Positions 5,084 through 62,229 of a stretch of 64,000 nucleotides of DNA are shown piece after piece. The stretch is from sequence record OQ790161.1, one strand, 5' to 3'. The position numbers were made by a program, and so were the translations under genes. How positions within the stretch are numbered: the stretch's first letter is position 1; each line of letters opens with the position of its first letter. The notes under the pieces were generated by a model. It searched no databases. It was not told the origin of the DNA and saw only the letters and a program-made list of their open reading frames with translations.

Positions 5084-5332
5084 ATGAAGAGTTGGCGCAT
5101 TGTACAGTTCTGCGTTCAACTTGGACGCTTCACCCGTGCCTTGTGGAACGGTAAGCTGGTGATGAACGAACGCGGGGAAATCCACGCAGTCAACGTCACC
5201 GTTGGAGAGATCGCATCGTCTTCGGGCAACATCTCCCATCTGCCCATCCGCAAGTTCAAGCTCAAGGGCGGCAAACGATCACCGGAAGTGGCGGAATTGG
5301 TAGTCGCAGCAGATTCAAAATCTGCCGGGTAA
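5084..5332 (+). CDS. Hypothetical protein; 3' end overlaps tRNA-Leu
   Basis: AAGG RBS, 2 nt after upstream stop. Confidence 0.5.
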   Translation: MKSWRIVQFCVQLGRFTRALWNGKLVMNERGEIHAVNVTVGEIASSSGNISHLPIRKFKLKGGKRSPEVAELVVAADSKSAG

Positions 5333-5366
5333 CACCGTGAGGGTTCGAGTCCCTCTTTCCGGACCA
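5282..5366 (+). tRNA. tRNA-Leu(CAA)
   Basis: ccggaag/tttccgg acceptor, gcaga-tt-CAA-aa-tctgc, long variable arm, T-arm, CCA. Confidence 0.95.
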
Positions 5367-5465
5367 AACCCAAAGTGGGGCTAGAAGATCCGTGCAAGTC
5401 GGAGTGCCCTATTTGGTCACCCTCGCCCCTGGGAATCTGGGGTACCAAATAACAAAGGACTTCGA

Positions 5466-6017
5466 GTGGGTATTGAAATCGAACGGAAGTTCTTAGTGGA
5501 CGTGACGAGGCTCAGCTCGTCCCTCAACGCAACAAAGCCCGACTCCGTCAAGCGACTGAGCCAGTGGTACTTCAGCAGTCCGGAAACTCTGGAAGGTGGT
5601 CAGAAGGCGTCCGTCCGTGTCCGTACTGAACGACAGATCACCCTCTGGTCGATGGAGCGTCGTGAAGCTCTTGGCTTTGTCGATGATTACGAGAGCTGGT
5701 TGAACATCAAGTCCGTCGGTACCGGTCACACGCGCCAAGAGTACGAATATTCCATCCCCAACGAAGACGCCGACCTGATGCAGGCTTTGGCCGTGGGGGC
5801 GATCGTCACCAAAGATCGCGTGGTCATCAAACAAGGCGACCTGAAATGGGAGATCGATTTCTTCCTCGGTGAGAACAAAGGTCTGGCGGTGGCGGAGATT
5901 GAATTGCCCTGTCCGGACTATCCGTTTGAGAAGCCTGATTGGATTCTCAAAGAAGTTACCGATGATCTGCGTTACACCAACGTGGCATTGTCCTCCACAC
6001 CCTTCCAGAGTTGGTAA
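5466..6017 (+). CDS. CYTH-domain (triphosphate tunnel) enzyme
   Basis: N-terminal EIERKFL (ExExK), RxR, EYEY, WEIDFF, AEIEL, YTN motifs. Confidence 0.9.
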   Translation: MGIEIERKFLVDVTRLSSSLNATKPDSVKRLSQWYFSSPETLEGGQKASVRVRTERQITLWSMERREALGFVDDYESWLNIKSVGTGHTRQEYEYSIPNEDADLMQALAVGAIVTKDRVVIKQGDLKWEIDFFLGENKGLAVAEIELPCPDYPFEKPDWILKEVTDDLRYTNVALSSTPFQSW

Positions 6018-6028
6018 TGCTCCATTGC

Positions 6029-6189
6029 GTTAAGATGTAAGGCGGAAAGCTTGGCGGTCCTAAAAACGGGGAACATGTGGCCCCATCCGAGACTGTTAGG
6101 TTCACAAGGGGTGTCGCACTGCCCACTGACGAGTGGGATTACGGTGCGCGAAACAGACAGTGGTCAGGCTCTCCTCCTTACATCTTAAC
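6029..6189 (+). ncRNA. Candidate structured ncRNA B (~161 nt)
   Basis: Perfect 14-bp terminal stem gttaagatgtaagg/ccttacatcttaac with internal hairpins. Confidence 0.55.
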
Positions 6190-6210
6190 CAACCGAGTAT
6201 GTAGTCCCCC

Positions 6211-6510
6211 ATGAACAATACCATTCGAAAGATCCGCACGATTTCCACGGAAGGAATGGTACAGCAGGACATTGAAGTCCCCGAGGACAAGGGCCTCTAC
6301 GGCGAGCACATCATGGCCAAGGTTGTTGAGCTCTTCGAAGCCCAACCTGACGCCAAGGCCGTGCTGGTCGGCATCGATGTGAGTGGGTTCCGCTCGCGTC
6401 GTGAAGAAGGGGAGACTTTCAGCGCATTCATCGCCGCCGGCTTCGGCTGGAGTCTGGTGGGCTGGAATCCGAAGTCAGCATTCAGCGGCGTCCTTGTGAC
6501 CCGCAAGTAA
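6211..6510 (+). CDS. Hypothetical protein
   Basis: ORF with phage-typical codon usage. Confidence 0.7.
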   Translation: MNNTIRKIRTISTEGMVQQDIEVPEDKGLYGEHIMAKVVELFEAQPDAKAVLVGIDVSGFRSRREEGETFSAFIAAGFGWSLVGWNPKSAFSGVLVTRK

Positions 6511-6564
6511 CATCTCCATCCTAGACCGTTGGTTTTGGAGAGGACCGAGAAGTTCAAGTTCGTT

Positions 6565-6704
6565 CGATGAGTGGTGGAATTGGTATACGCGTGGCCGACC
6601 CCTTAATGGGGAAAAGTTGCAGCCAGAGGGGGAACTACGCTCTCTGGTGCCTGGCAGTGGGTGCGGCCTTAGGCCATCTGCGGGTTCGACTCCCGCCTCA
6701 GAAA
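6565..6704 (+). ncRNA. tRNA-Leu-like RNA with ~75-nt insert in anticodon arm; weak acceptor stem, no CCA
   Basis: Leu-type D-arm gtg-gaattggtata-cgc, tggcc/ggcca stem, T-arm gcggg-ttcgact-cccgc. Confidence 0.6.
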
Positions 6705-6856
6705 GCACTGTCCGAACGAATGAACTTGAATGAAGTGTCTAGGCCCGGAGTTGTTGAACCAGAGAGAGCTAAGGGTGCAGGCTCTGGGGATCGTGACTAT
6801 TGTAAGCCTGGTACGTCGCTAGTCACCGACGTCGTGGAAACCCGTCACAAGCAATA

Positions 6857-6885
6857 CCCCCCACCCTTCGGGGTGGGGGCTTATG
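6857..6885. terminator. UUCG hairpin followed by TATG
   Basis: ccccccaccc-ttcg-gggtggggg-c-ttatg. Confidence 0.7.
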
Positions 6886-6938
6886 CTGTCAATTTCCACA
6901 TAGAGGTCACAGACTGTGAACCTTTTCGAGACACCAAC

Positions 6939-7226
6939 ATGACTCTGTGGCAAACCATCCTCGTAATCGTTTATATGGGAGGCGCGTGGTCCTGTTTCAC
7001 ACAGGGCATGGAGCGCAACGCCGATGTAAAGTCCAAGCTGATCATGGGCTACCCTGTCCACCCCATGACCATGTCTTTCCACAAGTTGTTCTACGCCAAC
7101 ATGGTGCAGATCATCATAACGGCAGTGCTGTGGCCGATCACCATGATCATCGGCATTGGCCTGCTGTTGTACAACCTCCACAAGTTCAAACGCGAGTTCA
7201 ACGTCCGCCGCGGTCAGCGCAAGTAA
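6939..7226 (+). CDS. Hypothetical membrane protein
   Basis: ATG at 6939 chosen because the upstream part of the track ORF runs through RNA elements and a terminator; two TM segments. Confidence 0.7.
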   Translation: MTLWQTILVIVYMGGAWSCFTQGMERNADVKSKLIMGYPVHPMTMSFHKLFYANMVQIIITAVLWPITMIIGIGLLLYNLHKFKREFNVRRGQRK

Positions 7227-7340
7227 CCCGCAGGACTGAGTTAGTTTTTACCGAGCTGGCTGACACTGTGTAGGTAGCAGCCTGCTTTCTACAACTAGGG
7301 GATAGACCCCTTTCTCCACCCACCATAGATAGGAATTATC

Positions 7341-8426
7341 ATGGACACGCAACACGATTACTCGGTTTTCATTGGACGCTTCGAACCTTTCCACAACGGC
7401 CACCTGGCCGTGGCTCGCAAGGCACTGGAGATGGGCAAGAAGCTGATCGTCATCATCGGTACCGCCAACCGCCCGCGCACGATCAAGAACCCCTGGGTTG
7501 TTGAAGAACGCGCGGTCATGATCCGTTCGGCCTTGGCCGAATACGGTGATCGGGTCATCATCGGACAGGTGCGTGATCACCTGTACAACGAAGACCTGTG
7601 GCTTGCTGATGTGCAGCGCGTGGTGCGCGACGCGGTGGCTTTCGACACGGAAGCATCCGAAAAGCCCATCATTCGCATGATCGGTCAGTCCAAGGACGAC
7701 TCGAGTTACTACCTCAAGAAGTTCCCGCAATGGCCGGTGGTCGATGTGCAGCACACCACTGTACTCTCGGCGACGGATCTGCGCCGGTACCTCTTCGAGG
7801 CCCGCAAGGTGGAGACCCATGGTGGCATGATGTATATCCGTGCCAACGTCCCGGCGTCCACCTACGCCATGATCGATGCTTTCCGTCACAGCTCGCCGGA
7901 CTACGACCAGCTGTTGCGTGAGTACGATTTCATCAAGGACTACAAGGCTGGCTGGGCTGGTTCTCCGTACGATGTGTCCTTCAACACGGCCGACTCTGTC
8001 GTGACGTGCGCCGGCCACATCCTGTTGATCAAGCGCAAGCCTGAACCCGGTAAGGGCCTGTGGGCACTACCCGGTGGTTTCATCAAGCCGCACCAGACGG
8101 CGCTGCAAGCGTCCCTGGCCGAGCTGCGTGAAGAAACCCGCCTGAAGGTTCCTGAAAAGGTGATCCTCGGTTCGCTGCGCAATCAGCGTCTGTACGATCA
8201 TCCCGAACGCAGTCTGCGCGGCCGGACGTTTACCCAAACGTTCCACTACGCACTCGACTTTGATGAACGACCCAAGGTCCGTGGTGGCGATGACGCCAAA
8301 GAAGCAAGGTGGTTCCTCTTCAGCGAAGCCCTGGAAATGGGTGCGCGCCTGTTCGAGGACCACTTGGACATCTTCGAGAACGAGCTGGGCATGCATGCTC
8401 CGCCGCTTCCCTCGCTGGTGATCTAA
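7341..8426 (+). CDS. nadM: Bifunctional NMN adenylyltransferase / Nudix (ADP-ribose) hydrolase
   Basis: FIGRFEPFHNGH (HxGH), LSATDLR, Nudix box GGF-x-ELREET, FEDH C-terminus. Confidence 0.93.
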   Translation: MDTQHDYSVFIGRFEPFHNGHLAVARKALEMGKKLIVIIGTANRPRTIKNPWVVEERAVMIRSALAEYGDRVIIGQVRDHLYNEDLWLADVQRVVRDAVAFDTEASEKPIIRMIGQSKDDSSYYLKKFPQWPVVDVQHTTVLSATDLRRYLFEARKVETHGGMMYIRANVPASTYAMIDAFRHSSPDYDQLLREYDFIKDYKAGWAGSPYDVSFNTADSVVTCAGHILLIKRKPEPGKGLWALPGGFIKPHQTALQASLAELREETRLKVPEKVILGSLRNQRLYDHPERSLRGRTFTQTFHYALDFDERPKVRGGDDAKEARWFLFSEALEMGARLFEDHLDIFENELGMHAPPLPSLVI

Positions 8427-8518
8427 ATAACACCGTTCCAAAACCCACCGCAACATCACGTGAAACAGCCGGAAGGGTAGACCTCCGGTTCACACCCGAC
8501 ATGAAGGAACTTCAGTCA

Positions 8519-9907
8519 ATGAACATCGAAAACCCGATCCTGAACACCGACAGCTACAAGGCCAGCCACTGGACCCAGTACCCCGCCAACACGGATGCGA
8601 CGTTCTTCTACGCCGAATCCCGCGGTGGTGTGTATGACCAGACGGTGTGGTTCGGCCTGCAGGCCATCCTCAAGGCGAACCTGCGACCGATCACCCACGA
8701 CGATGTCAATGAAGCTGCGATGCTGTACGCAGCGCACGGCGAGCCGTTCAATGTGGACGGCTGGCGTTACATCGTTGACAAGCACAATGGTCGCCTGCCC
8801 CTGCGCATCCGCGCTGCGGCCGAAGGCTTGGTGGTGCCGGTGCATAACGCACTGTACACCGTTGAGTCCACCGACCCGAAGTGCTATTGGCTGCCCTCGT
8901 ATCTCGAAACCATCCTGATGCGCACGTGGTACCCCACCACTGTCGCCACGGTCAGCTGGGCGTGCAAGCAAGTCATCCGCTCGTACCTTCAGCAGACCAG
9001 CGACATCCCCGACGACGTCCTGCCCTTCAAGCTCCACGACTTCGGCGCGCGTGGCGTGTCGAGCACCGAGAGCTCGGGCCTGGGCGGCATGGCTCACCTG
9101 GTGAACTTCATGGGCACGGACACCGTGCTCGGCCTGGTGTACGCTACGCGCTTCTACAAGGCCGGCATGGCCGGCTTCTCGGTCCCTGCGGCCGAGCATG
9201 CCACGATCACCCCGTGGGGTCGTGACAACGAAGTGGAAGCCTACCGCAACATGCTGAAGCAATTCGGCCGTGAAGGCGGTATCGTCTCGGTGGTATCGGA
9301 CAGCTACGACATCTACCACGCTATTAGCGAGCACTGGGGTAAAACCCTTCGCGACGACGTGATCAACTCCGGGGCAACCTTGGTGATCCGTCCGGACTCG
9401 GGCGAACCGGTGGAAGTCGTACTGAAGTGCTTGGAACTCATCGATGCTGCCTTTGGCAGTACGGTCAACTCCAAGGGCTTCAAGGTCCTCAACCATGTGC
9501 GCGTGCTGCAAGGCGACGGCATCGATCCGGCCATGCTGGAGGCAATCCTCCAGGCCTGTACCCAGCGGGGTTACTCCGCTGAGAACGTGGTCTTCGGCAT
9601 GGGCGGCGGGCTGCTCCAGAAGGTCAACCGTGACACGCAAAAGTTTGCACTCAAGTGCTCGGCTGCGCGCGTCAATGGCGAATGGATCGACGTCTACAAG
9701 GACCCGATCACCGATAGCGGCAAGCGCTCCAAGCGTGGCCGGCTGTCGCTGTTCCGCCATCGCGAATACGGCACCTTCGGGACCTTCCGCACTGATGGCC
9801 AGCAGACGATCCCCGCTGGCTATGATGATGCGATGGTGACTGTGTGGGTAAACGGCGAGTTCGTGCAGGAATGGACCTTTGACCAGGTTCGTGCCAACGC
9901 AGGCTAA
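8519..9907 (+). CDS. nadV: Nicotinamide phosphoribosyltransferase
   Basis: TDSYKASH, WYPTTVAT, LHDFGARG, AAEH, VVSDSYD, IRPDSG, QGDGI, FGMGGGLLQ, KSKRGRL. Confidence 0.95.
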   Translation: MNIENPILNTDSYKASHWTQYPANTDATFFYAESRGGVYDQTVWFGLQAILKANLRPITHDDVNEAAMLYAAHGEPFNVDGWRYIVDKHNGRLPLRIRAAAEGLVVPVHNALYTVESTDPKCYWLPSYLETILMRTWYPTTVATVSWACKQVIRSYLQQTSDIPDDVLPFKLHDFGARGVSSTESSGLGGMAHLVNFMGTDTVLGLVYATRFYKAGMAGFSVPAAEHATITPWGRDNEVEAYRNMLKQFGREGGIVSVVSDSYDIYHAISEHWGKTLRDDVINSGATLVIRPDSGEPVEVVLKCLELIDAAFGSTVNSKGFKVLNHVRVLQGDGIDPAMLEAILQACTQRGYSAENVVFGMGGGLLQKVNRDTQKFALKCSAARVNGEWIDVYKDPITDSGKRSKRGRLSLFRHREYGTFGTFRTDGQQTIPAGYDDAMVTVWVNGEFVQEWTFDQVRANAG

Positions 9908-9927
9908 CCGCGCAATGCCTTTGTAAC

Positions 9928-10045
9928 GGCCGACCCCTTTTTCCGAATGCCGGCTAAAGACCCGGCGGTAGAATTTGGGGAAGGCCACCTTCGGAAAACT
10001 GTAGGTGGATAACCGAAGTAAGTCGCTCTGGCTGCCCTTGCGGCC
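9928..10045 (+). ncRNA. Structured intergenic element downstream of nadV
   Basis: ggcc-ga-cccc/gggg-aa-ggcc, gccgg/ccggc, and competing ccacct/aggtgg, cttcgg/ccgaag pairings. Confidence 0.4.
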
Positions 10046-10152
10046 AAAACTATCTGACTAGTGGTTGACATGGGTTGGCACAGCGTTTGAGCGACACCTG
10101 CCTTCTCGGATCAACGGAACCTTCACCCTCACCCCTTTTAATGGACGGACCA

Positions 10153-10491
10153 ATGAACGACGCAGTTGCAGAAACCTCGGAAGTTGAACAGCTGCGCGTG
10201 CAGTTGGCCGGTTGTGGTGTGGTTGCCATGTGCAACACCCGCGAGACCCTGAAGCAGCAGATGCCCAGCCGTGAGTCCTTCGGTTACTCGCAGTCACTGC
10301 AGGAAGTCCACGATGGCGTGCTGCGTGAGATCAATGAACGCGAACGTGCCGGCGCCTACCGTGAGGCGATCGAGAAGATCGCCCCGTTGGCCAACAAGGA
10401 AACCCTGATGGCGCTCGCCAGTACGTTCCACGATGGTCCGTACCGGGACCCGCAGCTGGTTGAGATACTGCACGCGGCCAGCCAGAAATAG
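10153..10491 (+). CDS. Hypothetical protein
   Basis: GGACGG RBS before ATG 10153. Confidence 0.7.
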   Translation: MNDAVAETSEVEQLRVQLAGCGVVAMCNTRETLKQQMPSRESFGYSQSLQEVHDGVLREINERERAGAYREAIEKIAPLANKETLMALASTFHDGPYRDPQLVEILHAASQK

Positions 10492-10493
10492 AG

Positions 10494-10771
10494 TTGGGTT
10501 AGTCCGCCCCAGTGGGATAGGGCAAGATGTGTGTTAGGCCTACGCGCCCCCAGAGTCCTCTCCAGGACCTTTCCGCTATCAACGGATCGACCACACTTGT
10601 TCTTGAACATAAAGCGGACACTAAAACAATCACGGAGTAACATCGCGGCCTCCGCGGTGCCGGATTGTTAGTAGGGGGTAAAGTCGCAGGGCCCTGCCTC
10701 CGATGCGCTAGCATCACCCCTATTTGGATTGGTCTCCTTAGTCTGTAACACATTGCGTTCTTCAGACCCAA
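10494..10771 (+). ncRNA. Candidate multi-domain ncRNA D (~280 nt)
   Basis: ttgggt/acccaa closure; gtccgc/gcggac, aacaatc/gattgtt, catcgcgg/ccgcggtg, tagggg/ccccta helices. Confidence 0.55.
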
Positions 10772-10810
10772 ACGTCAGTGTGTTATGGAGTAAGTGACCT
10801 AGGAAAGGCC

Positions 10811-11224
10811 ATGATCGCATTTGAGGAACCTATGATCGAATTGACTCGTCAGCAACAGAACTTGTCTGCGCTGCGTCATCCCCAAGTGGGTGACCGTTGG
10901 CTGGAGCGCGGTTTCCAGCCAGCAGGTGTGGTACGCGCAGTGATCTTCGGTCGCTACGTCATGGTCGACTTACAAAGCAAGCCTGAGATCAAGTACTGGA
11001 GTCTGGCCGAATACGCCAACCACTTCAAGTACAAGTCCATGGATGCAACCTGGGCCGACGTCGAACGCTCGCCGCATCCACTGACGAACCGGGACGCACT
11101 CAAGCAGATCCTGTACTTCTTCCATCGCCGCTGGCAACAGCAGTGGCAAGCGCTGAAGGGACCGTTCCCCAAGACGTTCAACATCTTGGGTTTGAAGGTG
11201 ACGCTGGAACGAACCAAACGTTAA
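10811..11224 (+). CDS. Hypothetical protein
   Basis: AGGAAAGG RBS. Confidence 0.7.
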   Translation: MIAFEEPMIELTRQQQNLSALRHPQVGDRWLERGFQPAGVVRAVIFGRYVMVDLQSKPEIKYWSLAEYANHFKYKSMDATWADVERSPHPLTNRDALKQILYFFHRRWQQQWQALKGPFPKTFNILGLKVTLERTKR

Positions 11225-11245
11225 ACTTTACACCTGCGTTTAATC

Positions 11246-11539
11246 ATGCGAGGCCACATGCAACGTTGCGCTGAATGCGGTTACCACACGCCGTGGGGTG
11301 AGTCACTCAAGCACTTCATTGGGTGCGAGCACACCAGCTCACATGGCAACGGACAAGCACAGGCATTATCTGACCTCCTGTCGGGAAAAGCCGAGCGTGC
11401 AGGTCTGAGCCGTGCCGATCAAGATCACACCTTCGAACAGTTCAAGCGTCTCTTCGGTGACCAACCGAAACTCGCAAGTCCACTGGTCGTTGGACTCGAT
11501 CAGAAACTCGTGAAACATCTGTCGGTAAATTTGCATTAG
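11246..11539 (+). CDS. Hypothetical protein with CxxC motif
   Basis: CAECG...C/H residues. Confidence 0.6.
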   Translation: MRGHMQRCAECGYHTPWGESLKHFIGCEHTSSHGNGQAQALSDLLSGKAERAGLSRADQDHTFEQFKRLFGDQPKLASPLVVGLDQKLVKHLSVNLH

Positions 11540-11559
11540 CAAACTGCCTATGGTATGTA
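11531..11559 (+). promoter_or_regulatory. Sigma70-like promoter upstream of tRNA cluster
   Basis: TTGCAT-17 nt-TATGTA with TG-N extension; TATGGTATGTAA recurs at 61807. Confidence 0.5.
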
Positions 11560-11615
11560 ACACACCTCTGCCGCAGCGCAGAGTAATACCCTGTGCCCTA
11601 AATTGGGCACAACAC

Positions 11616-11706
11616 GGATCGATGGCAGAGTCTGGCTTATCGCACCTGTCTCGAAAACAGGAGTGGGGGAAACCCACCGTAGGTTCAAATCCTACTCGGT
11701 CCGCCA
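11616..11706 (+). tRNA. tRNA-Ser(CGA)
   Basis: cctgt-ct-CGA-aa-acagg, long variable arm, CCA. Confidence 0.95.
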
Positions 11707-11711
11707 CATGA

Positions 11712-11828
11712 AACCCTCTAAAGCATCGCAACGCATCGGCACGTGAAACCGATCGTATACTCCGCGCGCCGCTCCCTCGGAGCACCGCCGGGAGGTGTAG
11801 ATGGTCGACCACTACGGTCGATGGGGTT
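11712..11828 (+). ncRNA. Structured spacer RNA between tRNA-Ser and tRNA-Gln
   Basis: aaccc/gggtt closure with atcgg/ccgat, gctcc/ggagc, cacc/ggtg, tcgacc/ggtcga hairpins. Confidence 0.45.
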
Positions 11829-11840
11829 AACCTTTTACGA

Positions 11841-11918
11841 TGGGGGAGTCGTCTAGCGGCCAAGGACCCCAGGTTTTGATCCTGGTATTCGTAGGTTCGA
11901 ATCCTACCTCCTCAGCCA
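11841..11918 (+). tRNA. tRNA-Gln(TTG)
   Basis: ccagg-tt-TTG-at-cctgg, CCA. Confidence 0.93.
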
Positions 11919-11971
11919 CACACAAGGGACCTTCGGGTCCCGCAGCGCCTAGCGCTTAGTTTTTTGTTTCA

Positions 11972-12047
11972 GGGTCGGTAGCTCAATTGGCAGAGCGGCG
12001 AGCTCCAAATTCGTCGGTTGTGGGTTCAAGTCCTTCCCGGCCCGCCA
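11972..12047 (+). tRNA. tRNA-Trp(CCA)
   Basis: gcgag-ct-CCA-aa-ttcgt, gggtcgg/ccggccc, CCA. Confidence 0.92.
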
Positions 12048-12069
12048 TAGTTACAACAACAGTTTCACT

Positions 12070-12159
12070 GGGTTGGTAGTTCGTTAACGGTAGGCGAGCC
12101 AGACTGTAAATCTGGAGCCCATAGTGGCCTTATAGGTTCGATTCCTTTACAACCCACCA
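12070..12159 (+). tRNA. tRNA-Tyr(GTA)
   Basis: ccaga-ct-GTA-aa-tctgg, long variable arm, CCA. Confidence 0.92.
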
Positions 12160-12168
12160 CGTTTCAAC

Positions 12169-12244
12169 ACAGCGTTCGTCTAGCGGTTTAGGATAACGGC
12201 CTTTCACGTCGTCAACACGGGTTCGAATCCCGTACGCTGTACCA
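12169..12244 (+). tRNA. tRNA-Glu(TTC)
   Basis: acggc-ct-TTC-ac-gtcgt, acagcgt/acgctgt, CCA. Confidence 0.95.
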
Positions 12245-12266
12245 CATTCACAAGGCTCGTTACGAC

Positions 12267-12512
12267 ATGACACGTAAAAAGTTCAAAGACCTCGAGAAGA
12301 TGGTCGATCACATTCTGGCTGATCCCAGAATGCAGAACGAAGCAGTCATGATCAACGGCGCGCCTATCAACACCGATTATCTCAAGGAATGCTTGACCGC
12401 TTTCCGTCGCATTGAAATGCGACTGATTTTGGGTGAGTCCGTTTCTCCGCTAGAACGATTGGCGGTTGAACTGATCATGCAGACATTCGGCGTTGAGTTT
12501 CAACCAAAGTAA
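12267..12512 (+). CDS. Hypothetical protein within tRNA cluster
   Basis: ORF fills the spacer between tRNA-Glu and tRNA-Ile. Confidence 0.7.
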   Translation: MTRKKFKDLEKMVDHILADPRMQNEAVMINGAPINTDYLKECLTAFRRIEMRLILGESVSPLERLAVELIMQTFGVEFQPK

Positions 12513-12515
12513 CAC

Positions 12516-12591
12516 TGTGGATTAGCTCAGTTGGTAGAGCGTTCCCCTGATAAGGGAAAGGTCGATGGTTCGAGTCCATTATCCGCAACCA
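12516..12591 (+). tRNA. tRNA-Ile(GAT)
   Basis: ttccc-ct-GAT-aa-gggaa, CCA. Confidence 0.95.
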
Positions 12592-12598
12592 GTTTCAA

Positions 12599-12688
12599 GG
12601 GCATGTGTGTGAGCGGTTTATACAAGCGGGTTGCTAACTCGCCGACCCTTAAAAAGGTCCGTAGGTTCGAATCCTACCGTGCCCGCCA
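12599..12688 (+). tRNA. tRNA-Ser(GCT)
   Basis: gcggg-tt-GCT-aa-ctcgc, long variable arm, CCA. Confidence 0.95.
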
Positions 12689-12890
12689 TCTTCGTGGAGA
12701 TCCAGGTATCGAGGCCTGGCAGGGGCTCCCATCGGGGGTAGTGCCTGTAGCGACAATAGAGAGCACCGCGATCCCCCGCACTTTCGTAGAGCTGCAAGGC
12801 TTCGGCCGGACTCTACGTCTTTGCGGGTTTAAAATGTAGGACAGTATCTTCCAGACAGCAGTAAGCTGATTCACCCGTCTGGAGATAACC

Positions 12891-13124
12891 ATGTTTGACT
12901 ATACGAAGTACTGTCCTGTTTGTGATTCACTCGACACTTGGGTTCCCTTCGGTCCCGAGGACCTGACCCTCACGTGCGGGTCGTTCTCTGAAACGATGAA
13001 GGCCGTGTACGGCTCCATCTGTACTAACTGTGGTGATCGTCGCCTGAGCGATGAAGACCATGAACGGTATGCGCAGATGGGTGACCGAGTGGTCCTCAAG
13101 TGGCAAGCCTCAAACGCGTCTTAG
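12891..13124 (+). CDS. Stand-alone YgiT/MqsA-type zinc-finger domain protein
   Basis: YCPVCD...(~33 aa)...ICTNCGD followed by a helix, the layout of the MqsA N-terminal domain; no HTH; GGAG RBS. Confidence 0.65.
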   Translation: MFDYTKYCPVCDSLDTWVPFGPEDLTLTCGSFSETMKAVYGSICTNCGDRRLSDEDHERYAQMGDRVVLKWQASNAS

Positions 13125-13190
13125 CTCAGTTGGCAGAGCAGGAGAATCATAATCTCTTTGTCCGGGGTTCGAATCCCTGAGACGCGACCA
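13115..13190 (+). tRNA. tRNA-Met/Ile2(CAT), non-initiator
   Basis: ggaga-at-CAT-aa-tctct, paired C1-G72, CCA. Confidence 0.9.
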
Positions 13191-13192
13191 AA

Positions 13193-13333
13193 ACAAGAAC
13201 CACAACTGCGGTCATCGGTCCGCAGCCCGCATAGGCCTCGGTGGGGTGGAAAATCTGAAGTACTGTCATCCGGTACTTTGGTGTCCGGCAAGCCACCCAC
13301 GCAAGTGGGACTGTCGGCCACTGTGGTTCTTGT
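13193..13333 (+). ncRNA. Candidate structured ncRNA C (~141 nt)
   Basis: Perfect 12-bp terminal stem acaagaaccaca/tgtggttcttgt; ctgcgg/ccgcag, aagtac/gtactt, cccac-GCAA-gtggg hairpins. Confidence 0.55.
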
Positions 13334-13490
13334 CTGTCCCTGAGTCAAGGCAGGTAGTCCTTGGACGGAAGCATGCTCCGCATTACCTAGAGCGAAAGGG
13401 TAGACGTTAAACCGCTGGAGGCGAACCAAGCCGACCGGGGATACGCATGTAAGTGTGGGTTGGTAGTGACCGCCTTCGGGCGGTTGCGTT
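13334..13490 (+). ncRNA. Structured element E ending in a UUCG hairpin
   Basis: tcaagg/ccttgg, gcatgc-tcc/gga-tac-gcatgt, ttacc/ggtag, accgcc-ttcg-ggcggt. Confidence 0.4.
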
Positions 13491-13502
13491 TAGTGTACTA
13501 AG

Positions 13503-13580
13503 GGTTGTCCGTAGCTCAGCTGGTAAGAGCGCCGCACTGTGAATGCGGAGGTCATGGGTTCAAACCCCATCGGGCACCCC
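13503..13580 (+). tRNA. tRNA-His(GTG), CCA not encoded
   Basis: ccgca-ct-GTG-aa-tgcgg; G-1:C73 pattern; ends CCT. Confidence 0.88.
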
Positions 13581-13600
13581 TTAGTGCATTATCAGTTTCA

Positions 13601-13690
13601 GGGTCAGTGGGTGAGAGGCTTAAACCAGCGAGTTGGAAGCTCGCCGCGCCCTGCGGGGCGCCGTAGGTTCGAATCCTACCTAATCCGCCA
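13601..13690 (+). tRNA. tRNA-Ser(GGA)
   Basis: gcgag-tt-GGA-ag-ctcgc, long variable arm, CCA. Confidence 0.93.
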
Positions 13691-13698
13691 GTTTCAAT

Positions 13699-13837
13699 GG
13701 CGTTGCTAGCTCAGTTGGTAGAGCGCTCGTATATATGGGGTTCAACTCCCCACTTGCCCACCGTGCGAAAGCACGTCTGGGCGAGCACTGGTTAAAAAGA
13801 CGAGAGGTCGTGGGTTCGAATCCCACAATACGCCCCA
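13699..13837 (+). ncRNA. tRNA-like RNA with 69-nt anticodon loop (insert or intron)
   Basis: D-arm gctc-agttggta-gagc, stem ctcgt/acgag, variable AGGTC, T-arm gtggg-ttcgaat-cccac, CCA. Confidence 0.65.
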
Positions 13838-13848
13838 ATGTTTCTATA

Positions 13849-13917
13849 GCGAATGTAGCTCAGTTTGGGAGAGCACCTGTCTCTTTGTGTCGCGGGTTCG
13901 AGTCCCGCCGTGCTGCC
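13849..13917 (+). pseudogene. Degenerate tRNA shell (anticodon arm shortened)
   Basis: Intact D-arm and T-arm, only 17 nt between them, poor acceptor stem. Confidence 0.6.
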
Positions 13918-13923
13918 TGTGTG

Positions 13924-13998
13924 CTGCACGTAGCTCAGCTGGTAGAGCAAAAGACAACTAACAGGGGGTCACAGGTTCGATTCCTGTCCTTCGCGCCA
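13924..13998 (+). pseudogene. Degenerate tRNA shell (unpaired anticodon arm)
   Basis: Intact D-arm, T-arm acagg-ttcgatt-cctgt and CCA; anticodon and acceptor stems do not pair. Confidence 0.6.
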
Positions 13999-14007
13999 AG
14001 TTTCAAA

Positions 14008-14084
14008 GCGTGTGTAACTCAGTCTGGTAGAGTCGCAGCCTTCCACGCTGTTGGTCACGAGTTCGAATCTCGTCGCACGCTCCA
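14008..14084 (+). tRNA. tRNA-Gly(TCC)
   Basis: gcagc-ct-TCC-ac-gctgt, gcgtgtg/cgcacgc, CCA. Confidence 0.95.
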
Positions 14085-14112
14085 ATTAGTAGATCCGTGA
14101 AACGCATTTGCC

Positions 14113-14188
14113 GGTCAGATGGCAGAGTGGTAATGCACCGGATTGCAAATCCGCGTACTCGCTGGTTCGAACCCAGCTCTGACCTCCA
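14113..14188 (+). tRNA. tRNA-Cys(GCA)
   Basis: cgga-tt-GCA-aa-tccg, ggtcaga/tctgacc, U73, CCA. Confidence 0.95.
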
Positions 14189-14210
14189 CCACCTCACACA
14201 GGACTTCGCC

Positions 14211-14405
14211 ATGTCGCGTCATCAGCGCTACTATGATGGACTGAATCAGCTGACCACGGAACAAGGTCTGACCACGCGCGTTGCTAACGACGTGCTCTAC
14301 TTCCGCCAGCAAGCCAACTGGAGTCAAGGGTTGGAAGACCAGTTCATCGAACAGGCTCGCGATGGTGAGGTTCCTGACATCACCCAGATCGGACGTTCGA
14401 CATGA
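14211..14405 (+). CDS. Hypothetical protein
   Basis: AGGA RBS, ATG 14211. Confidence 0.7.
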   Translation: MSRHQRYYDGLNQLTTEQGLTTRVANDVLYFRQQANWSQGLEDQFIEQARDGEVPDITQIGRST

Positions 14406-14728
14406 CCCAGAAAGTCAAGTACACCTTCACCGCAGTCACCGCCCGTCCCAATCCGGTCATTGGGATTCCCGAAGGTCTCGAGCTCACCCGTGAGCAGTTC
14501 TTCGAAGCGCTGGCCAATGCCCGCGTGACCCGGCTGTACCTGGACAGCAACACCTTCGCTCAGGTCAACTACGGGTTCGTCAAGAAGGACAACACGCTGG
14601 TGGCTGACCTGCTGCCGCACTTCCCCGATGTCTCGATCACGTTGCTGGCCAACGGCGAGGCGATCATGGAAGTGTCCAAGGATTCGCAGTACCAGCCTAA
14701 CGCCTTCGCCATCGACGTCGAGCTGTAA
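14402..14728 (+). CDS. Hypothetical protein
   Basis: ATGA overlap with upstream gene. Confidence 0.75.
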   Translation: MTQKVKYTFTAVTARPNPVIGIPEGLELTREQFFEALANARVTRLYLDSNTFAQVNYGFVKKDNTLVADLLPHFPDVSITLLANGEAIMEVSKDSQYQPNAFAIDVEL

Positions 14729-14738
14729 CGGTTGTTGC

Positions 14739-14833
14739 CCCTACCGACAGGTAGGGAACTTCCTTGGCGCCCAGGGGTACGGAGAGTTTGCCTATCATCT
14801 CGCCGTAACGACGTCAAGGCAGGTTGGGATAGG
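14739..14833 (+). ncRNA. Structured element upstream of tRNA-Asn (possible pseudoknot)
   Basis: ccctacc/ggtaggg, ccttgg/ccaggg, tacgg/ccgta hairpins; loop cctatc complementary to gatagg. Confidence 0.4.
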
Positions 14834-14845
14834 TTTCAGTTTTGA

Positions 14846-14921
14846 GGTTCATTAGCTCAGTCGGTAGAGCATGGCACTGTTAATGCCAGGGTCGTAGGTT
14901 CGAATCCTACATGAACCGCCA
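14846..14921 (+). tRNA. tRNA-Asn(GTT)
   Basis: tggca-ct-GTT-aa-tgcca, ggttcat/atgaacc, CCA. Confidence 0.96.
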
Positions 14922-61890: not shown

Positions 61891-62229
61891 ATGTTCAGTA
61901 TGGAAATGGGTTCGGTCCACAGCAAGGGCAACGTGCGTGGCCACATCTTCAGTTGCCGTCCCGATGACACCGGTCGTGACGGGACGGTCACCCTGGCGTA
62001 CTACCACACCTACCAAGATGGCTCGCAGATCACCGGCACTGCACTGCACACCTTCGAAGTGGGCTTTCGTGTCACCAACCTGTACGACTATCAGGCCGAG
62101 CTGAAGATGGACTTGCAAGACATCCGAGTCTTCCTCAATGGTCTGGTGCGACGGCACTTCGAGATCCAGATGCTGTTGGGTACCAGTCATCGGGGGTTTG
62201 TCATCCGCGACCTCGAGTGGCGTCTGTAA
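61891..62229 (+). CDS. Hypothetical protein
   Basis: AAGGA RBS. Confidence 0.75.
   Translation: MFSMEMGSVHSKGNVRGHIFSCRPDDTGRDGTVTLAYYHTYQDGSQITGTALHTFEVGFRVTNLYDYQAELKMDLQDIRVFLNGLVRRHFEIQMLLGTSHRGFVIRDLEWRL

Follow-up and report, generated by a model that had tools for sequence, protein, structure and literature searches.

A candidate family of tRNA-Leu-derived structured RNAs in nucleus-forming jumbo phages

An unannotated gap in phage RTH11

We analysed a stretch of 64,000 nucleotides (nt) from the Xanthomonas jumbo phage RTH11 (OQ790161.1, 312 kilobases (kb)). This stretch, which we will call the window, matches the record at 100% identity, and its position 1 is at about position 62001 there. 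Our subject is a tRNA-like element inside an unannotated gap (6511-7007). The gap lies between an open reading frame (ORF) of 99 amino acids (aa) (6211-6510, plus strand; WJJ54958.1), which is on the same strand as the RNA, and a 72-aa ORF (7008-7226). The 99-aa protein has no match in Pfam and no known domain. By comparing the element to its homologues, we arrived at a structured RNA of about 180 nt (6552-6731) that appears to descend from a phage tRNA-Leu.

The element has tRNA genes in its vicinity. ARAGORN identifies a tRNA-Leu gene with the anticodon CAA (5282-5366), 1.2 kb upstream of the element, and 14 tRNA genes in the window (5282-14921) are called by both ARAGORN and Rfam. In the 19 kb of the GenBank record OQ790161.1 that we listed (59000-78000), there is no tRNA feature. 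The RNA is annotated in none of the phage records that we examined, and a full-text literature search that paired "tRNA-like" with jumbo-phage or Chimalliviridae terms found no description of it.

An initial annotation, made from the letters of the window, had described a Leu-type tRNA-like RNA at 6565-6704 with an insert of about 75 nt. All of the strings that it quoted are in place: the D-arm gtg-gaattggtata-cgc (6574-6590), the T-arm gcggg-ttcgact-cccgc (6680-6696), the strands tggcc (6592-6596) and ggcca (6672-6676), the short hairpin cccc-ttaat-gggg (6599-6611), and the ccagag/ctctgg hairpin (inside 6619-6650). RTH11 also has the reported remnant of an acceptor stem, four base pairs (bp) of UGAG/CUCA without a CCA. 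Two features had been missed, namely a 15-bp terminal stem (6552-6566 with 6717-6731) and a 7-bp helix (6653-6659 with 6706-6712). Overall, what had been observed is confirmed, and the interpretation given to it is partly supported.

Taken by itself, the RTH11 sequence shows a pattern that chance could produce. Folding gives z-scores of -0.65 (6565-6704) and -2.1 (6545-6740). With default settings, ARAGORN calls no tRNA at the element. If introns are allowed, it reports a "tRNA-Ala with an 88-nt intron" there, only at a relaxed threshold and among many false calls. In its tmRNA mode, ARAGORN reports only noise at low thresholds, none of which coincides with the element, and the tmRNA models of Rfam are silent at the locus. 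No other Rfam model, RF00005 (tRNA) included, matches 6540-6740 at the gathering score or at E ≤ 10, and neither Intron_gpI nor the other ribozyme models match the locus at E ≤ 10. An exact search for the D-arm string found only ordinary tRNA-Leu genes of unrelated AT-rich phages. What puts the element far beyond chance is that it has 11 distinct homologues with compensatory changes.

Homologues and covarying helices

A blastn search matched Xanthomonas phage LucasX (77% identity over 240 nt) and the Ralstonia phages RP12 and RP31. Searching for the pattern of the conserved 3' block yielded three jumbo-phage contigs from IMG/VR and four metagenome records (one of these is a duplicate). The same pattern is present in a 286-kb contig from a Paraburkholderia sp. 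assembly, which is identical to one of the IMG/VR contigs. The Ralstonia phages FLC1-1B and FLC4-3B were added by searches with other members as queries. Looser 3' patterns, run against genome and viral collections, gave only chance matches plus the Paraburkholderia copy of the contig that had already been found. The sources of the 11 distinct members are Chimalliviridae-type jumbo phages that infect Xanthomonas or Ralstonia, one Paraburkholderia assembly, and metagenome data. (RP12 is classified in the Chimalliviridae, which are phiKZ-like phages that form a nucleus.)

We used a covariance model, R1, that describes the core of the element (160 positions). The members score 98-151 bits. RTH11 scores 151.5 bits (E = 4e-37) and is among the sequences that R1 was built from; FLC1-1B and FLC4-3B, which were not used to build it, score 98 bits each. 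In the whole records of RTH11, LucasX, and RP12, R1 finds exactly one copy each. R1 has no match in Pseudomonas phage D6 or in 150 other Burkholderiaceae genomes, and the latter result indicates that the RNA is phage-borne and travels with the phages. RP12 and RP31 carry a single tRNA gene (for Asn) and yet keep the RNA (PMC5468394), so it is not the leftover of a large set of tRNAs.

R1 also has no match in IMGVR_UViG_3300011559, which has a completeness rating of 100% and, at this locus, is more closely related to RTH11 than any other. There, the flanks align and the core is deleted, with a degenerate piece of the 3' tail (GAGAAGCAC) remaining. Since the flanks align and a remnant of the tail is left, this is a deletion and not an empty site. 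In another contig, UViG_3300013939, the core is 90% identical and stands behind a different gene, with an unrelated sequence in its terminal stem.

We then examined the covariation. On a plain MAFFT alignment, RNAalifold predicts five helices: the D-stem, the base of a long hairpin (P4), the 7-bp long-range helix (H5), a 4-bp hairpin, and the T-stem. Compensatory changes occur in 14 of these 25 pairs. In the R1-based alignment of the 11 sequences, 97.6% of the cells are paired, as compared to 81.7% in shuffled alignments (none of 500 shuffles reached the observed value), and if the partners are slid by 1-3 columns, just 34-52% are paired. In that alignment, 8 of 19 pairs have changed on both sides. 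The family alignment has 48 invariant columns. These homologues bear out the view that this is a Leu-type tRNA-like RNA and not the product of random decay, and both the insert hairpins and the compensatory changes are seen in them.

We also considered whether the element might be coding. It is overlapped by an ORF on the plus strand (6567-7226) and by another on the minus strand (6475-6708). We rejected both, because the homologues differ by indels of 2 nt and by larger indels that are not multiples of three, as well as by paired compensatory changes. A tmRNA-like tag frame from the GCA at 6619 was rejected too: it ends differently in each homologue and is not conserved.

The members of the family share one layout, GAGUGG-D-arm ... 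GCCUG-H5-variable hairpin-T-arm-CUCAGARAGCA-H5', flanked by the terminal stem (P1), and RTH11 conforms to it. In RTH11, P1 has 15 bp, two of which are G-U, and it encloses the whole element. Its 5' strand (GUUCAAGUUCGUUCG, 6552-6566, plus strand, as for all the parts below) pairs with its 3' strand (CGAAUGAACUUGAAU, 6717-6731) in both the minimum free energy (MFE) fold and the centroid fold. Across the family, P1 ranges from 6 to 15 bp, and its position is constant: it ends 1-3 nt before GAGUGG and resumes 2-4 nt after the 3' block. The P1 sequences of different phages are unrelated (for example, GAUCACACACAUUC/GAAUGUGUGUGAUC and GUUAGGUUG/CAACCUAAC). Nevertheless, all nine homologues tested have a stem in the same register, so P1 covaries wholesale. 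Duplexes between cognate flanks have a mean of -17.2 kcal/mol, versus -7.0 ± 3.5 kcal/mol for non-cognate flanks. The P1 stems of RTH11 and LucasX are homologous and differ by compensatory changes.

Inside P1, the tRNA-like part begins with GAG, a remnant of acceptor positions 5-7 that is invariant in all 11 sequences, followed by U8 and G9 (6569-6573). U8 is present in 9 of the 11 members and is a G in FLC1-1B and FLC4-3B. Of the acceptor stem, only this GAG (6569-6571) and the complementary CUC (6697-6699) are conserved; this amounts to 3 bp, with both strands invariant. The Leu-type D-arm (6574-6590), which is supported by RNAalifold and by the alignment to tRNA-Leu, has a 3-bp stem and an 11-nt loop with A14, G18, G19, and A21. 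The middle pair of its stem covaries (UA in 7 members, GC in 2, AU in 1, and UG in 1).

Between the D-arm and H5 lies a variable insert of 60-130 nt. The combination of a short and a long hairpin that had been noticed in RTH11 recurs here in all the homologues, with its sequence free to vary, and constrained folding places both hairpins between the D-arm and H5 in every member tested. The short one, P3 (CCCC-UUAAU-GGGG, 6599-6611), has loops of 3-9 nt that are unrelated in sequence. The suggestion that this loop contains a UAA anticodon (CT-TAA-TG) does not survive the comparison, as LucasX has TCA in this place and other members have GAAA or different sequences; the P3 loop is not an anticodon loop. 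The long one, P4 (6619-6650), appears in the MFE folds, and RNAalifold supports its basal 6 bp. The base of P4 shows compensatory changes (GC in 5 and CG in 3 at one pair; AU in 4, CG in 3, and GC in 1 at another), and between RTH11 and LucasX, two A-U pairs become G-C. P4 is longer and branched in the Ralstonia clade. A 75-nt insert closed by tggcc/ggcca had also been proposed, along with an alternative 9-bp helix. Neither stands: in LucasX, RP12, and the Ga0265338 contig, the tggcc and ggcca strands are not complementary (the 5' strand in LucasX is TGTTG), and the 9-bp helix fails in the same three. Instead, the ggcc/ggcc at 6665-6675 in that region forms the hairpin of a tRNA-Leu variable arm.

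H5 has no counterpart in tRNAs. In RTH11, it pairs GGCAGUG (6653-6659) with CACUGUC (6706-6712), and all seven pairs form in 11 of 11 sequences. At two of its positions both partners have changed (UA in 8, GU in 2, and AU in 1; UA in 7, GC in 3, and AU in 1). Other forms of H5 are GACAGUG/CACUGUC, GUCGUUG/CAAUGAC, GUCAUUG/CAAUGAC, and GUCAAUG/CAUUGAC. In two homologues, H5 is within the unconstrained MFE fold.

The remaining parts resemble the 3' part of a type-II (Leu) tRNA. The variable-arm hairpin (GGCC-UUA-GGCC, 6665-6675) is supported by covariation (CG in 6, GC in 2, and UA in 2 at one pair) and by the tRNA-Leu alignment, and it takes the forms GGUC/GACC, GGGC/GCCC, and GACGC/GCGUC in other members. 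A U at the equivalent of position 48 is found in 7 of 9. The T-arm (GCGGG-UUCGACU-CCCGC, 6680-6696) is 100% paired in the 11 sequences, and three of the five pairs of its stem have changed on both sides. The elbow nucleotides (A14, G18, G19, and the UUCGA of the T-loop) are invariant, while the D- and T-stems covary. After the T-arm come the CUC, which corresponds to acceptor positions 66-68, and a conserved single strand, AGAAAG (6697-6705). In the DNA, CTCAGA..GCA is invariant in all members.

Downstream of P1 is a conserved non-coding block (6732-6880, plus strand) with two covarying hairpins and a GC-rich terminator-like hairpin (6858-6879) that closes the block. (This last hairpin was found listed on the other strand; its stem is palindromic.) The block is conserved in RTH11, in LucasX (L004 2424-2600), and in UViG_3300011559 (L005 4648-4815), the relative that has lost the core. 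The stem of hairpin A is CCAGAG/CUCUGG, CCAAG/CUUGG, or UCAGAG/CUCUGA, with the conserved loop AGCU.AGGGUGCAG; hairpin B has a CCAGUCA-type loop. The block may be part of the same transcript as the RNA, and it may serve as a second RNA domain or as a regulatory leader of the downstream gene, which in UViG_3300011559 encodes an RNA ligase. As a separate observation, the motif CTTATGCTG directly follows the GC-rich hairpin in RTH11 (6880-6888), and in RP12 it comes directly after the GC-rich hairpin that follows the RNA (L007, about 1735-1745). This motif may be a junction signal between terminator and promoter that these phages share.

Descent from tRNA-Leu and comparison to known RNAs

We aligned the element to the tRNA-Leu genes of RTH11, LucasX, and D6. 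The 5' part of the element matches the end of the acceptor strand, U8, G9, and the Leu-type D-arm. In true tRNA-Leu genes, the counterparts of its 3' part are the variable arm, the T-arm, and the first nucleotides of the acceptor 3' strand, and the conserved tail CUCAGAA-A-GCA occupies the positions of the acceptor 3' strand, A73, and CCA. The closest match of all is a displaced 3' half of a tRNA-Leu(UAA) that follows an HNH endonuclease gene in D6. Taken together, these matches argue that the RNA descends from a phage tRNA-Leu, and the ancestor was probably of the UAA type.

The locus in D6 (L008 617-1552; OQ363659.1 15691-16626) has an arrangement of its own. A complete tRNA-Leu(UAA) is followed by the HNH gene and then by an unannotated second copy of the 3' part of this tRNA, which runs from the anticodon loop to the CCA. 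The pattern looks as though a homing element had settled here and supplied a 3' half of its own as a replacement.

As compared to tRNA-Leu, the RNA has kept the top and the core of the molecule: U8, the D-arm with A14, G18, and G19, the long variable arm, the T-arm, and 3 bp of the acceptor. Two variable hairpins, P3 and P4, now take the place of the anticodon arm. The former 3' end has been recruited into H5, next to the former site of the 3' strand of the anticodon stem. With both of its ends held in P1, the RNA has neither a free acceptor end nor a CCA. And because the anticodon and the helices proposed to close the insert are not conserved, and the acceptor is reduced to 3 bp of GAG/CUC, the element is neither a decoding tRNA nor an intron-bearing tRNA.

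Which known RNAs does it resemble? It belongs to no family in Rfam 15, and it is not a tRNA, a tmRNA, or a YrlA RNA. Like a type-II tRNA-Leu (such as the phage tRNA-Leu(UAA)), it has U8, a 3-bp D-stem with an 11-nt GAAUUGGUAUA loop, a long variable arm, a T-arm, and the CUC, followed by an A73-like A and by GCA in the place of CCA. Unlike such a tRNA, it has no anticodon stem and loop, just three acceptor pairs, its 3' strand in H5, ends that are closed by P1, and two extra hairpins, and tRNA finders do not detect it. In terms of the tRNA family (RF00005), the D- and T-arms with their elbow are present, but the cloverleaf score, the 5-bp anticodon stem with its 7-nt loop, and the 7-bp acceptor with CCA are absent. 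Nor does it look like a tRNA-Leu(UAA) with a group I intron: there is no intron core, and the would-be exons form neither an anticodon stem nor an acceptor stem.

The nearest precedent in kind is species 1 RNA of phage T4 (rnaC), a stable phage RNA of 139 nt whose annotation reads only "small, stable RNA; species 1 RNA" and names no function. Its T-arm is canonical, its ends pair, and a pair of long hairpins stands in place of the D and anticodon arms. However, rnaC has no Leu-type D-arm, variable arm, or H5, and it sits inside a tRNA cluster. R1 has no match to rnaC at E ≤ 10. Since the two have no similarity by sequence or by model, we rejected rnaC as a homologue and view it as an analogue.

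Three other kinds of RNA share aspects of this design. Like YrlA (RF02553), the element is a non-decoding tRNA mimic with a long stem formed by its ends, and some carriers have a link to an RNA ligase. In contrast, YrlA is closed on its anticodon side and has a hairpin acceptor, and the element has no Ro-binding motif, no Rsr gene (in RTH11), and no match to the model. The tRNA-like domain of tmRNA also combines a T-arm with a reduced D region and has other helices in place of the anticodon arm, but the element lacks a chargeable acceptor with G3-U70 and CCA, lacks a conserved tag frame, and is passed over by both ARAGORN and Rfam. MALAT1 and its mascRNA offer a tRNA-shaped fold that is embedded in a longer transcript with a paired leader and trailer. 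Theirs has a 7-bp acceptor, is cleaved by RNase P and RNase Z, and receives a CCA, whereas the element has 3 bp and its trailer is in H5.

On these grounds, the element represents a new family of structured RNAs that derive from tRNA-Leu, and the family is well supported in jumbo phages that form a nucleus. The family is absent from Rfam 15 and is ready for a seed alignment. It is also a case of tRNA remodelling in which the 3' tail has been made into a substitute for the lost anticodon stem while the acceptor was closed off, and it cautions that genes of this kind escape both tRNA finders and the annotation of phages.

Another tRNA-like stretch in the window, at 13699-13837, had been grouped with the element as a second instance of one design. 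It has a tRNA scaffold with an intact 5-bp anticodon stem (ctcgt/acgag) and an insert of about 70 nt with a T-arm-like hairpin (GGGG-UUCAACU-CCCC). Its fold has a z-score of -3.9, and ARAGORN with the intron option (-i) and default thresholds calls it an intron-bearing tRNA-Gln(ctg). Within the phage collection, nothing outside RTH11 matches its first 110 nt or so (13690-13800), a part that takes in most of the insert. R1 gives no match at this stretch, and the anticodon stem is still intact, so we rejected the proposed kinship; the two share a theme and not an ancestry.

A third stretch, at 13849-13998, contains two nested tRNA-like halves. Its outer ends pair (gcgaatg/ccttcgc), and a g and CCA follow. 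The inner module, a T-arm, a hairpin, and a D-arm, scores 44 bits against the YrlA model of Rfam, which is less than the gathering score of 69. With ARAGORN -i, the entire stretch is called a tRNA-Leu(cag) with a 52-nt intron. The inner module has matches of 74-81% in unannotated DNA of small Xanthomonas and Xylella phages of about 43 kb (Tabio, Sopo, and Usme, for example).

The RNA-ligase neighbourhood and possible roles

In RP12, RP31, FLC1-1B, FLC4-3B, and UViG_3300049460, a terminator-like hairpin comes after the RNA, and the next gene encodes an RLIG1/Rnl-type ligase (about 200-270 aa). The ligase gene scores 32 and 25 bits against the Pfam family RLIG1 (PF17720; the cut-off is 25) and has the nucleotidyl-transferase motif KWDG. 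In the FLC phages, it was deposited as a "putative RNA ligase". Human RLIG1 is reported to be similar in structure to T4 RNA ligase and to ligate tRNAs in vitro (PMC11494293). UViG_3300011559, which lacks the RNA, has a ligase homologue at the same locus (37% identity). It seems that the ancestral order was a small ORF, the tRNA-like RNA, and the RNA ligase, and that the various lineages then kept both the RNA and the ligase, only the RNA, or only the ligase.

The ORFs upstream of the RNA differ between the phages. Homologues of the 99-aa protein of RTH11 stand 5' of the RNA site in LucasX and UViG_3300011559; a search for related loci with this protein found nothing. In RP12, the upstream ORF encodes a P-loop protein (GSGKT) that is also 99 aa. 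We considered whether this protein (ORF260) and the equally long protein of RTH11 are the same, but they are not homologous. The cassette of the Ralstonia phages (L007 1151-2383; L032 2014-3289; L011 1551-2903), which comprises the P-loop protein of about 100 aa, the tRNA-like RNA, the terminator-like hairpin, and the RLIG1/Rnl-type ligase, adjoins the gene for the beta-prime subunit of RNA polymerase.

What might the RNA do? We think that the best explanation overall, with a probability of about 55%, is that this conserved, non-decoding, tRNA-Leu-derived RNA of about 180 nt is a tRNA mimic in a conflict over the cleavage and repair of tRNAs. The RNA would be cut out of the transcript of the upstream small ORF, or would end it, and would fold into an L-shaped, tRNA-like form. 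It would then act in trans by offering a tRNA-Leu-shaped surface, neither chargeable nor open to cleavage at an anticodon, to a tRNA-binding protein. Its preferred role would be as a decoy for a host nuclease that targets tRNAs, or else as a partner, cofactor, or regulator of the phage's RLIG1/Rnl-type ligase. We prefer a role in tRNA cleavage and repair because of the link to the ligase, because defences based on tRNA nucleases are known, and because phages that shield their DNA probably expose their RNA in the cytoplasm. Nucleases that target tRNAs are described in PMC10264068 and PMC13056530 as widespread anti-phage effectors that are countered by phage tRNAs and RNA ligases, and Chimalliviridae are described in PMC11797060 as shielding their DNA from DNA-targeting defences. 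This shielding would leave cytoplasmic RNA as an exposed target, and host defences that act on cytoplasmic RNA or tRNA may be the main threat that remains for nucleus-forming jumbo phages. A conserved tRNA-shaped RNA that does not decode, and that ancestrally seems to have stood beside an RNA ligase gene, would be a testable candidate for an RNA player in this conflict.

A narrower version is doubtful as it stands, and we offer it tentatively. The RNA could be an uncleavable type-II tRNA decoy that soaks up a host tRNA-targeting nuclease, or a defence protein that binds tRNA-Leu, and it could be interchangeable with ligase-based repair of tRNAs. Such an interchange would explain why the Ralstonia phages keep both, why RTH11 and LucasX have the RNA alone, and why UViG_3300011559 has the ligase alone. 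If it were true, this would be the first RNA anti-defence decoy on a tRNA scaffold in nucleus-forming phages, which would still be vulnerable through cytoplasmic RNA and translation.

Several observations weigh against a role as a tRNA mimic in this conflict. The RNA is dispensable in at least one lineage, as its core is deleted from UViG_3300011559. We did not detect a ligase homologue in RTH11, LucasX, UViG_3300013939, or the Paraburkholderia assembly, all of which carry the RNA, so the ligase is not an obligate partner. No protein gene next to the RNA is conserved across all the clades. (On the other hand, the lack of a neighbouring protein gene common to all clades points to a product that acts in trans.) The pairing of GAG with CUC, and hence a pseudoknot with H5, is plausible but unproven, since these nucleotides never vary. 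And among public sequencing runs, the stretch was found only in short metagenome contigs, which probably come from DNA rather than from transcripts.

The main alternative is that the RNA is a cis-acting element for processing or stability at the end of the mRNA of the upstream ORF. It would recruit RNase P, RNase Z, or the CCA-adding enzyme, or would block 3' exonucleases, and so define or protect the ends of transcripts. mascRNA/MALAT1 and the tRNA punctuation of mitochondria are parallels. The RNA is always on the same strand as the upstream ORF and 10-150 nt after it, a terminator-like hairpin follows about 10-20 nt after the RNA in the Ralstonia clade, and the elbow of the D- and T-loops, which RNase P recognises, is conserved. 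We nevertheless consider this unlikely: the upstream ORFs are unrelated between the clades, the acceptor-like helix is interrupted after 3 bp and would be a poor substrate for RNase P or RNase Z, and H5, P3, and P4 are conserved even though a plain punctuation signal would not need them. It is much less probable that the RNA is a small mobile element derived from a tRNA (similar to miniature inverted-repeat transposable elements, or targeting hairpins) with P1 as its terminal inverted repeat. Its presence differs between close relatives, the nearly identical core of UViG_3300013939 has another gene in front and another P1, and genes for HNH endonucleases lie beside the RNA in LucasX and beside the tRNA-Leu in D6. 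But each of the three genomes that were searched whole has a single copy, the degenerate 3' tail in UViG_3300011559 marks a deletion rather than an empty site, the homologous P1 stems of RTH11 and LucasX differ by compensatory changes, and the HNH proteins of LucasX and D6 share only the catalytic motif.

Two further explanations would keep the element closer to a tRNA. If it were a functional tRNA-Leu(UAA) with an intervening sequence, then cleavage and ligation (perhaps by the neighbouring ligase) would restore a decoding tRNA. The exon-like D-arm, variable arm, and T-arm are indeed of the Leu type, the P3 loops of RTH11 and UViG_3300013939 read UUAA(A)U, and some phages have the adjacent gene for an RNA ligase. 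However, no conserved sequence forms an anticodon stem (both tggcc/ggcca and the 9-bp helix fail in the homologues), P3 loops in other members read TCA, GAAA, or something else again, the acceptor has three conserved pairs and no CCA with its 3' strand committed to the covarying H5, the tRNA and group I intron models of Rfam are silent at E ≤ 10, and most carriers lack the ligase. We regard this explanation as already close to refuted. The idea of a decaying tRNA-Leu pseudogene with no function, which the deletion in UViG_3300011559 and the silence of the tRNA finders might suggest, fares equally badly. The RNA has been retained in phages of three host genera, and H5, which tRNAs do not have, is 100% paired; compensatory changes in five helices and 48 invariant columns exclude a drifting pseudogene. 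Least probable of all, in our view, is an RNA akin to the YrlA type of Y RNA, whose terminal stem would tether Ro60/Rsr while the tRNA-like domain recruits other factors. It would account for the terminal stem next to a tRNA-like module, and there are sub-threshold matches to YrlA elsewhere in RTH11. In Salmonella, the rsr-yrlBA-rtcBA operon links Y RNA-like RNAs, Rsr, and an RNA ligase, and the adjacent ligase of some phages echoes this. But YrlA is silent at the locus even at E ≤ 10, and the element runs from D-arm to T-arm with its closure on the acceptor side, whereas YrlA is arranged the other way round. P1 lacks a conserved sequence for a Ro site, and the whole RTH11 record has no gene with a TROVE domain (PF05731), although the controls were positive.

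Other features of the region are side observations. In the tRNA cluster at 13.5-14.0 kb, the motif GTTTCA(A) is repeated just upstream of several tRNAs. A gene with a CYTH domain is at 5466-6017. Just downstream of the element is a pair of genes for NAD salvage (7341-9907), one for a NadM-type nicotinamide mononucleotide adenylyltransferase/Nudix protein and one for a nicotinamide phosphoribosyltransferase, and this pair is conserved in LucasX and UViG_3300011559.

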